A stretch of DNA of 62,001 bases, counting the filler, from Choristocarpus tenellus KU-1152 (taxonomy: Eukaryota > Protista > Phaeophyceae): the NCBI GenBank assembly GCA_964200185.2. It is 11 parts of 11 records of this genome, joined end to end, with 100 filler letters (N's around TTAATTAATTAA, not from the genome) between each part and the next. Parts side by side here need not be neighbours in the genome. Positions count along the whole stretch, not along the records: positions 42,663 to 46,916 come from CAXNAD020015463.1; 10 more parts are not named here. One strand, 5' to 3'. Both the position numbers and the translations under genes were made by a program. This document shows, one piece after another, positions 18,021-46,841 of the stretch. Positions within the stretch are counted from its first letter, which is position 1. Each line of letters starts with the position of its first letter. The notes beneath the pieces were generated by a model. That model did no database searches, was not told the origin of the DNA, and saw nothing but the letters and a program-made list of their open reading frames with translations.

Positions 18021-18775
18021 CCAGGTCGCCTTGAGCTTGGCCCACCCCCTCTTCACAACCTTTGCTCCCTTTGCCCCGAGATCAAAATCAGATTCTGAGA
18101 ATATGTCATTGTCACAACCAATCACCTTCCAATTGTGGAGGGAGGTGCAATAGCAGAATTGGAAGACAGCCAAGAAAAAAACAGGGGGAGGGGAAAGTGA
18201 GTTCATTGTAGGAAGGTAGTAAAGTAAAATGATGCTGCACCCTATGGAGACAAGTTTACCATGAGATTCAATGTGGACAAAGTAAGCGTAAAGGTGGAGG
18301 GAGGGCAATTCTAGTCTCCAAAAAAAGAGAAAAAAAACTAAAGTCCCCTTCAGCATCACGTAAAAATCCCAAATCCAACCAAACCACTGAAAAAAAAACA
18401 GACTTGTCTGGTATGTAGACTAAGCTCCACAACCTAAACACCCAAAACACACACTTGAGGGCTCACATACAACACACATCTATCAACAGAAAAATGCCCA
18501 CGTTCCCATACCGAATGCACAATCCACAATCCACAATAAAAATAAAACATAACAAGATCCTATCACACCTGGCAATAAACATTTCCTGCCACCATCTTCA
18601 CTGCACGCCAGACCTGGTGCCACTCATGCATACCCTGACCCGGGCAACTGAATGCAGCCCATACACAGGTTGTGTGTGGCTCAATTGGTGAGGCCCCCGT
18701 GGAGACAACAAGATTTCCATCTCGCTCTAGTGACACGTGGAATTCCTCATTCCCGCGCCATGACCATCCCCTCAC
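18021..18775 (-). CDS. Bulb-type (B/GNA) lectin domain-containing protein, internal exons 18775-18569 and 18125-18021
   Basis: FHVSLERDGNLVVSTG...CVWAAF matches the B-lectin L..DGNLV...VW repeat. Both exons are phase 0 with AG/GT borders. Confidence 0.5.
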
Positions 18776-42562: not shown

Positions 42563-43453
42563 NNNNNNNNNNNNNNNNNNNNNNNNNNNNNNNNNNNNNN
42601 NNNNNNTTAATTAATTAANNNNNNNNNNNNNNNNNNNNNNNNNNNNNNNNNNNNNNNNNNNNATGGACAGCTACCACCCCCCATAGATACTTTGGATCAG
42701 GGCCAAAAACGGACGCCAGCACCCCCCCCCAGTACTTTTACCCTATAATATGTGCATACATAAGAGTTGGCAAGGGCTGCAGTTAGTGCAGCACAATTAG
42801 GGTTCGTCAAGATATTGAAATACTGCTGTACCTCCAGGGGAGTAGTCTCTTCTGGGAATATTATCATAACGGTACAGTGGAGTCGAGGTCACAGTGTGGA
42901 GCAGTATTGGGGCAGAGCAGGGGTAAAGAGAGTATGGTTTCGAGTCAGGGCAAAGGCCCGAGCTGGAGTAAGGATATGCACCAATTCCAAGGCTGCTATA
43001 CTCCAAGAGGTTGCTTTGGGTTCAGTGCTGTTATCTACTTAGCAACACCTTAACCTGATGGATGGGAGGGTAGGGCATTGCGGCCCAACATGCTGAGGTG
43101 CCTCTTGAGCGACCAAACACACATGCACACACAGGGTGCAGCCTAAAGAAACCCGCGAAGTGTACCGAACCCACCAACTCTCATGAGGTTTTCAGAGTGA
43201 GCAAAAGACACCAAAGTACAGAAGTATATTCTAAACTCCAGATAATTTTCTATGCGAAGGGAATGGCATAGCAAAGTGCCACAACAGGTACAATAAAAAA
43301 ACACACGAAAGGCTCTCCCATCCCGCCTTTCTAGCCCCAACTGCAGTCACACATTTTGGTCCTCAACGCCCATAGCACGTTTCATCCTCCTCCTCCCACT
43401 CCTCCTCTCCTCCCCCTCTTCTTCTCAACCCCTCTTCCTCTCCATGGCCTCAC

Positions 43454-45769
43454 CTCAACCTCAGTGTGGCCCACTGTTAGGGTGCGTTGGTGCATGCCTC
43501 TCCGAGAGTACCACTCCGCTGTGCTGGAATCACAGGACATGAGGAGCAGGTGGCGACCATAGACATTAATAGCCTCGCCACAGCGGAGATCTTCCCAGGT
43601 AACACTGTCCACACGCTCTCGCTGATGGAGGGGATGTACCAACGTGGACGAGCTGTTAATGCAAGGAGGAGGGTGCCAATTCTCCAAGTGCCTTTACTAT
43701 TGGTTGATATGGGTGTAGGAACTGACTATCTGCTCTTTTGGTCATTTTATTCAATGTAATTACGATTTGTAACTGACTGCCGGTGTTCACTGCAGTCAGG
43801 TCAAGGGGAGACAAAGGCCCTGTGCAGGAAGATCTACGTATGGAAGGCTTACAAAAAGTCAAATGCCACGGTTGACAAAGCGCTCAAGGGGAGAAACAGG
43901 TTGTATGCTCTTTGTTAGACTCAATCCAGTCATGCTTGAGGTTTCTATCAATCTTTGGACTGTGTAAATGTTTTGAAGTACCATGTTGTACAGATGCACT
44001 ATCAAGTTCCACTCGTTTGCGCTTAGTACAAGTTCAGGTCCACCATATTGACCCATCTGTACCTTCTCTGATTTGGTACTTCGAAGTATCATTTGGTACA
44101 GTAATGCTCCAATGTACTTAAGAGTACTTGGTACACACTAGGGGACAACCACAAGGCACAGATGGGGTTGAGGTGAGGGTGTTGGAGTATCGATGCCCTT
44201 ACTGATAGGTAGGGCGTCAAAGAACTCATGTGTCCTGGAGTTGATGTTAATAACTATGGACTATTGTCATGATCAGTGGTTGACAGTACAAAGGGAAGCT
44301 AAAACAGATAAAAAAAAAAACTTCAGTAGATGAGGACTCGTTTGAGCAATCGGCCATTAACAGTTTACTGCAACACTGTCAACCCGATAATTGACTAAGA
44401 GGGATTTTCCAACAGCATTCCTGACTTCCTGTCGTAATATAGCCTCTCCTGTATATACTTTGGGCCAAACCAATATTTCTTGTACGAGCTCTTGGTCTAG
44501 CACCATCCAGTCTTACACAAGGGTTCAAGCATGCTCTTCTTATTTTCGTCCAGTTTTTGGTGTCAATGATCTAAGGCTGGAGATTTTTAAGGCCTGCAAA
44601 ATTTGTTATGTTCGTACATTTTTTTGAGGTTTAAAAATCGAGATATCAGTTCAGAAAGCGGAGTATAAATTTCTGTGAGGATTAACGTAGTACCTAGTGC
44701 CCTCAGGTATCGTGATAAGTGTTGCTAGCAAGAGGAAATTGACATACTCTCGACTTGAGCGGTGCATGAGATAGGGATCGGTCATTGCTATTCATAGGAC
44801 TACGAGAAAATGTTTACTTCATGGGTGGTTGTCCAAGGCAACAGCATATTCGCTGTCTTACAATTGTGTGTTAAGAGGAAACCAAAATATGTGTCATATT
44901 TTGTTTGAGGTACAGAGCCAGAGTAGTGCAAACCTGAGTGAAAGTATCTCAGAGGGTACGAATTTTGCCCCGTTTGTCTGTTTGGGACTTGGCTTCCCAT
45001 GTTTTTTTTTAAATGATATTTTAATTTCGGAGTAGGTAAAACGTATACATTATGAAAAGGTATGTCCGGAACAAGGATATTGACTCTTCCTAACGAATAT
45101 AATAGTCAAAATTACATCAAAATCGCAACGTCGGATTTTGGCCCCCAAACTGGTGCGGCTCTACCCTCTAAGATACTTTGACTCACCTGTGGATCCCTAG
45201 GACTAATGACCCCCCCATATCCTGTGGGCACAAATATAGAGTTTTTAGGAAGTTTCTGGCGCCGCAGGAGATTTGGAAAATTATGACGTCCCTCCGCTGC
45301 CACCTGGTTTCGATTTGAGAGTGGGAAGACTCAGTAGCGACAACATCCAGCATCTCTTTCTCACATGAAGTCTGAGAGGTTGGGGGGAAGGGGGGGTAGA
45401 AAATGGGGGGTGGGATGCCTTTTTTGAAGGTTGAACAACACATGCCCCCCCATAGATTTTCTACCCTCTGATACAAGACCCTGCCCCTGAGTTCCCACTT
45501 CGCAAGCACAGCAGTAAAAGTCGATTTACGGATCAGCACAATGCCCACAAACAATCAGCCTGAGGACTCTTCCTTTCTCCTTTCACGTCAAGCCTGTCCT
45601 ATCACCTACCTCCTTGATCTCTATTGTGTCGTTCAACAGGTAGTAATAAAGAATGTAGTCTCGCTTGTCCCCCTGCAGGCGGTTGTCCTTGTACTTGCAG
45701 AAAAATCTGAGAACTTTCCTATCTTTCTTGTAGAACTCTCCCTTCTCACGCCCTGGCATCATGGACCCC
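43454..45769 (-). CDS. EFHC: EFHC1/EFHC2 (Rib72-like) DM10-domain ciliary protein, internal exons 45769-45610, 45303-45187, 43621-43454
   Basis: DRKVLRFFCKYKDNRLQGDKRDYILYYYLLNDTIEIKE|V..EGRHNFPNLLRRQKLPK...|...VTWEDLRCGEAINVYGRHLLLMSCDSSTAEWY forms a complete DM10 domain with phase-0 GT-AG junctions. Confidence 0.9.
44936..45184. mobile_element. Sola2-like MITE, subfamily A, inserted at an EFHC splice donor
   Basis: Same TIRs as the other A copies, with a perfect 4-bp target duplication ACCT (44932-44935 and 45185-45188). Confidence 0.92.
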
Positions 45770-46673
45770 CTGACAACAATGGCGTGGAAGAGGGGGGTTC
45801 TATTGAGCTGCTGTAATTCGCTCCCTTTGGTTCTTTTGCATTAAAAAATATATTCCGAGTATATTGATGCATTAGGGATAGGGCTACACGAATCTGTCGG
45901 ACGTGAAAAACACATTTTTATATAGCATTTATAGACCACTGCAATGACTACCATCTCGCACTCATGAGTTTCATTTACCTCCCTACATGTAACCCAGAAG
46001 TGCCTCCATAGTGTCTACCTTGAAGTATACTCATGACACTAAGTAGAACCCTGCGAGTGAACCACTGGCCCTCTACAAGTTGAACTGAGACTCCAGCAAA
46101 TAAAGTATAGTGTTGTTTGGCTTGGTGTTGTTTGTATTGGCCTTAAGCAGTGGGAAACACACAGGCAAAGGCTGTTGAATGCACAGCATTTCTTGTTGTG
46201 TATGTGCCTGCAGGTGTGTGTGTGTGTGTGTGTGTGTTTGTTTGTCTGTGTGCTTTTGTCTGTTAAAAAAAATGGGTGGATAAGGGCAGAGGGATTTAGT
46301 GCATTTGTTGCCGTTGCCTTTGGTGCTGTATTTCAGGTGTCCTTGAATAATTGCTCGGATGCAGATGGTGAAAGGCTTCACTTCCAAGAAACTGCTTTTC
46401 CTTTCCACAAAGCCAAATTTCTGCGGTGCACACACATTCTACTCTAGTTCAGAATGCAATACTGCTAAACACAGATAGGTGCAGTACACCCCATGCCCAA
46501 CTGCACTATATATGCCTTGAACCTCTGCATCCTACCAGACTACTCAAGCATGCCCCACATCAGTGCAGAATCTACTAAATATCTCAAAGTGTCATAATAA
46601 TGTGTAGGGGATATTGAAAATACTTTCAAGTATACAACATAAGACATTCAATTAAGGTACTTTGTACAAGAAA

Positions 46674-46841
46674 GACTCAAAGTATCTAGGGGGGGTGGCG
46701 GCTGTCCATTTGGGGCCAATTTTTTAATGTGGCGATTTTTGGGTGATTTGGTTCAATACCTTGGGTGGATAATAAAAGTGCACTTTTCCTGGTTTTGGAT
46801 CAAATGGACGCTCTGGTGTAGACCCCCCCCCCCCCCCCCCC
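46674..46841. mobile_element. MITE subfamily B, lacking the right TIR
   Basis: GACTCAAAGTATCTAGGGGGGGTGGCGGCTGTCCATTTGGGG...CTGGTGTAGACCCC aligns with 42388-42562. Confidence 0.8.

Follow-up and report, generated by a model that had tools for sequence, protein, structure and literature searches.

The window is a 62,001-nt stretch of joined DNA parts from Choristocarpus tenellus KU-1152, and the locus lies in the part contributed by record CAXNAD020015463.1 (42,663-46,916). On the minus strand, the exons that surround the insertion described below, searched one at a time, match the DM10 domain (Pfam PF06565) at E = 2e-12 and 9e-5. By Pfam, PDB, and orthologue comparison, the domain starts in the exon at 45610-45762, whose true 5' end is probably 45769, and ends in the exon at 43454-43621 (RERV...VE). 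Between them, orthologue comparison places a 39-codon exon at 45187-45303 (VAAEG...SPRDPQ), which is 82-97% identical to its orthologues and terminates in CCACAG at 45187. The best PDB matches of the exons are EFHC2, EFHC1, and RIB72, and an Atlas search returned DM10 again and nothing further. On these matches, the host is an EFHC/RIB72 (DM10) flagellar gene.

A word search with one exon retrieved 15 relatives at 79-96% identity, and a second search, with the ORF of a relative as query, returned Sphacelaria rigidula (99% identical to that ORF), Discosporangium, and Tribonema minus; a further candidate, P0021, was rejected as an unrelated transporter. The exons of the window are 92-94% identical to the Sphacelaria gene model, and the EFHC exons are intact, with 73-97% identity to orthologues. 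Relative to the orthologues, the first DM10 exon seems to have its acceptor (45763-45772) moved 3 nt upstream, giving one codon more. The exons ending at 45187 and resuming at 43621 are separated by a phase-0 intron of 1565 nt (43622-45186, minus strand), which measures 1312 nt once a MITE and one copy of its target-site duplication (TSD) are subtracted.

Structure and family of the MITE

The MITE, a 249-bp non-autonomous element at 44936-45184 (no strand assigned), is bounded by GAG...CTC ends and by 23-bp terminal inverted repeats (TIRs) that are complementary at 21 of the 23 terminal bases; when the piece was shuffled 20 times, no comparable inverted repeat arose. Both ends read GAGT(C/G)AAAGTATCT. 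The exon-proximal TIR (45162-45184, minus strand) begins GAGTC and supplies positions +3 to +6 of a new donor, and the second TIR (44936-44958) begins GAGTG on the plus strand and presents, on the minus strand, a pyrimidine-rich terminal tract with an internal AG.

AGGT stands at 45188-45185 and again at 44935-44932 (minus strand), forming a 4-bp TSD around the element. The first copy (AG|GT) comprises the exon end and intron bases 1-2, and the second is a latent AG|GT, in which a possible acceptor at 44934 would directly adjoin the old donor at 44933. Exon sequence borders the MITE on one side only, the sequence beyond the element being intron. In-silico excision of 45186-44934 (253 nt, the 249 of the element plus 4) regenerates CAG|GTTTGC. 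This anatomy had been described accurately in the sequence-only reading, from the 249-bp MITE and the duplication of the exon/intron junction AGGT itself as TSD to the geometric reversibility of the insertion and the GTGAGT donor expected in either orientation from termini that both begin GAGT. The pyrimidine-rich MITE end and the AG abutting the original GTTTGC donor, also pointed out there, are present as sequence potential.

The termini are marked independently by three public DNA runs, in which contigs break at 44936 and 45184/45185. Summed contig depth in run X1 reaches ~5e5 over the MITE against ~17 over unique flanks; summed depth itself is not a copy number, and the family likely comprises thousands of copies. 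The three runs agree on a high copy number, as had been proposed. The copy at 44936-45184 departs from the family majority letter at many positions, indicating an insertion that is not very recent or a minor subfamily, and contigs that bridge the end of one copy and the start of another suggest clustered copies. An Rfam search gave no match. Scanning metagenome and viral contigs with a 23-mer TIR pattern gave no matches, and a 16-mer pattern gave chance matches together with a repeat that recurs in sample Ga0182004 and is unrelated, with no family copies. L042, which comes from a human-gut metagenome, was excluded from the scripted analysis.

Sola2 elements have short TIRs with GRG...CYC ends, a rule to which the 23-bp TIR and GAG...CTC ends of the MITE conform. 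Sola2 non-autonomous elements are reportedly described in Bao et al. 2009. A 4-bp TSD is a further Sola2 criterion (PMC3627910, PMC10741241), represented here by AGGT on both sides of the single copy examined, and the TSDs of Sola2 are AT-rich, of the AWWT type (PMC3627910). The MITE is comparable to Sola2 non-autonomous elements in its 4-bp TSD, 23-bp TIR, and GAG...CTC ends, and the summarised flanks of its family look A/T-rich, but the TSD of the EFHC-locus copy carries GG where AWWT is reported. By structure the element appears Sola2-like, in keeping with the Sola-type MITE first suggested, and from this structure we infer its Sola2 affinity; no autonomous transposase partner lies within the piece. 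Sola-1 and Sola-2 families are listed for Ectocarpus, where DNA transposons are abundant in introns (PMC12477816). The MITE is a new family of an already known kind.

An ancestral intron and a probable rebuilt donor

Comparison with seven distinct brown-algal-type orthologous loci (L159, L162, L163, L164/165, L167/168, L170, and L172 (Sphacelaria rigidula assembly)) revealed the same phase-0 intron after ...SPRDPQ, with CAG|GT and no MITE. In the six loci whose contig reaches it, the next exon begins RERV after AG and the intron measures 215-7171 nt, and the Sphacelaria gene model likewise ends its exon at PRDPQ. The presence of this intron without the MITE in all seven loci shows that the intron is ancestral and predates the insertion. 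On this comparison, the MITE landed on an existing donor and made no intron. Removal of the MITE alone runs the frame into the intron, where it stops after 20 codons, and DM10 homology resumes at 43621.

Two further arrangements were considered and rejected. That an exon is missing from the 45187-43621 interval is contradicted by Tribonema, in which the same 9-residue spacing separates SPRD from VTW, and a TSD origin of the AG|GT that borders the upstream intron on either side is contradicted by the orthologues, all of which conserve the E|V codon pair there. The L162 locus shows two peculiarities of its own: an apparent GC donor after its third exon (18053-18060), where the others have GT, and a Copia-type RVT_2 ORF within its MITE-free orthologous intron of 7.2 kb.

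Of 25 donors scored, the candidate new donor GTGAGT (45181-45186, minus strand) ranks highest, matching CAG|GTAAGT at 8 of 9 positions. Past AG|GT, the donors of this gene are only loosely constrained. The displaced ancestral donor GTTTGC (44928-44933, minus strand) matches at 6 of 9 and lies inside the range of orthologous donors, which at this position read GTGCGT, GTGCAG, GTATGC, GTGTGG, GTATAT, and GTACCT; given such loose donors, almost any GT following CAG seems sufficient here.

We propose that a chance insertion placed a copy of a high-copy Sola2-like MITE in the AG|GT of the old EFHC/RIB72 donor. Through the 4-bp duplication, GT would have remained next to the exon, to be completed to GTGAGT by the first bases of the MITE. 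The spliceosome would then join this new, stronger donor directly to the acceptor at 43622, taking out all 1565 nt of the intron in a single step and leaving the mRNA unchanged, the insertion tolerated, and the downstream AG|GT a mostly idle by-product. We hold this sequence of events to be probable, with donor use, one-step splicing, and chance targeting all predicted; one-step removal is the simplest route, and an ordinary tolerated insertion on a donor is the most likely account of the locus.

Recursive splicing would reach the same mRNA by removing the 253-nt segment 45186-44934 first and then joining the regenerated CAG|GTTTGC to 43622. The geometry for this route is exact. The candidate site combines, as recursive sites do, a pyrimidine tract and AG with a donor immediately after, the pyrimidine share of the MITE far end (0.70) is like that of real acceptors, and the donor restored in the process, being ancestral, is presumably functional. 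In a predicted fold (z = -2.95), a TIR stem takes up donor positions +3 to +6 and the pyrimidine tract, and may draw both ends close; the same stem, however, may bury the tract. The candidate acceptor at 44934 is also preceded, at a distance of 14 nt, by a competing AG from the TIR, in violation of the AG-free zone kept by all 15 real acceptors, none of which has an AG within 25 nt. Like recursive splice sites and zero-length exons, the site has an AG abutting a donor inside an intron, but the EFHC intron is not very long (1.57 kb, with an orthologue coping with 7.2 kb at the same position) and the site is not conserved; recursive splicing is known chiefly from very large introns (PMC2773006). 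We consider this two-step route unlikely. If an intermediate joining 45187 to 44933 proved true, one insertion would have created a recursive splice site.

Fungal [D1,2] stwintrons (PMC12403724) resemble the EFHC locus in that the inserted sequence interrupts the donor of a surrounding intron. They need two splicing steps and have no TSD, whereas one step would suffice at the EFHC locus.

Target choice and the question of intron gain

Loose contig ends across the family accumulate at 44936, with 185 contigs in X1 and 140 in X2, the largest piles among those listed, and their consensus ends are A/T-rich. In X3 the pile is at 44935, with a consensus of AAA before T (ending AAAT). At the right end, joints halt at 45184 or, in 38-43% of the listed joints, one A beyond it; 45188 is absent among the joints listed. 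An AGGT target, in either orientation, would place a T at 44935, yet the listed X1 and X2 piles are at 44936, and no ACCT or AGGT signal appears among the summarised flanks of other copies shown, which represent consensus rather than per-copy TSDs. Indirectly, the A/T-rich family flanks fit the AWWT targets of Sola2 better than a preference for AGGT. The A that follows the element in ~40% of listed joints may mean that A..T-type targets such as AGGT are somewhat favoured.

The expected number of chance insertions was estimated for an assumed 300 Mb genome with 75,000 AG|GT donors, 2,000-30,000 copies, and a bias of 0.2-1. These assumed figures yield 0.1-7.5 chance insertions at AG|GT donors and 0.2-12 at exonic AGGT, so that a single insertion at a donor needs no special mechanism.

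The sequence-only reading had further cast the family as introner-like and as a possible generator of introns. That claim falls at this locus, where the intron predates the insertion in seven distinct orthologous loci; indirectly, the summarised family flanks also look A/T-rich, not AGGT. An introner is expected to form a new intron at a site that is intron-free in relatives and to constitute the whole intron between two exons; here the relatives carry the intron without the MITE, and excision of the MITE alone leads to the stop noted above. One introner feature is present, as the candidate GT and AG would both be co-opted from the AGGT of the TSD.

The locus nevertheless has close parallels among described routes of intron gain. 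A long-standing model of intron gain has a transposon entering an AGGT protosplice site (PMC3443670), and with this model the EFHC case shares a 4-bp AGGT duplication, AG|GT at both ends, and an insert that is exactly spliceable together with 4 nt; the model, however, concerns exonic AGGT and a new intron, whereas the EFHC copy sits on an existing donor with no gain. Some described introners draw one splice site, or both, from a 4-bp TSD (PMC9860276). The MITE-type introners of Symbiodinium, Chrysochromulina, and Florenciella (PMC9860276, PMC12130899) are likewise non-autonomous TIR elements with TSDs overlapping splice signals, but their families form many whole introns, each bounded by exons on both sides. 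A 2025 introner survey removes secondary insertions into pre-existing introns (PMC12130899), the category to which the EFHC MITE belongs. Sola goes unmentioned in the main texts of the introner surveys PMC12130899 and PMC9860276, which leaves uncontradicted, though it supports only weakly, the remark in the sequence-only reading that no Sola-derived introner was known to it.

That the MITE family acts elsewhere as a weak intron generator, with copies in exonic AG|GT being spliced precisely and surviving as new introns and the EFHC locus being a side case, is quite unlikely. Such a role would draw on ends that yield GTGAGT and a pyrimidine-rich tract in either orientation, on the likely thousands of copies with their 0.2-12 expected exonic AGGT insertions on the assumed figures, and on the precedent of introners in Florenciella whose two splice sites both come from the target (PMC9860276). 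No example was seen, however, and the EFHC locus is not one. Both splice dinucleotides must derive from the target, so only exact insertions into the four bases AGGT qualify; the flanks look A/T-rich and the MITE acceptor is weak. The brown-algal lineage underwent an early burst of intron acquisition, and its introns are mostly ancient and stable (10.1101/2024.02.19.579948). A few genuine new introns elsewhere are possible if the MITE acceptor works. The broader proposition, in which the Sola2-like family made precise new exonic introns via AGGT and also gave rise to a transposon-born recursive site at EFHC, is an unlikely one. Should MITE-sized new introns prove true, Sola would join the intron-making transposons.

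Probable tolerance of the insertion, and neighbouring repeats

Damage to splicing, in which the hairpin hides the new donor, 44933 is used instead, and the MITE is exonised with a stop at 45114, giving a leaky or null allele, is very improbable: the predicted stem (z = -2.95) may cover the new donor and read-through stops at codon 64, but the new donor is far nearer consensus and is transcribed first, contigs in two samples pass from the flank into the MITE, and the exons are intact and conserved at 73-97% identity to orthologues, which makes use of the old donor unlikely as the main outcome. As a tolerated insertion with a rebuilt donor, the EFHC MITE would offer a clean natural case in which a transposon persists at a splice donor by restoring the signal with its own end.

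A second high-copy repeat lies at 46674-46832, with a summed depth of ~4e5 in X1 and an end that shares the AAAGTATCT motif; the consensus end of its family seems to be GGGCTCAAAGTATCT, preceded by an A-rich flank. This repeat probably represents a sister family of MITEs that a related transposase mobilises. The cut-off end of another copy of this second family occupies 42663-42700, with 32 nt that are 91% complementary to 46678-46709, and the edge of the piece falls inside that copy. A CA repeat at 46204-46256 was skipped in the read comparison. Within the upstream intron, a decayed TIR-like fragment at 45445-45475 (repeat D1) resembles both MITE families and has raised depth in X3. A short TIR-like motif in the long intron, at 44446-44467 (repeat D2), is possibly an old relic.
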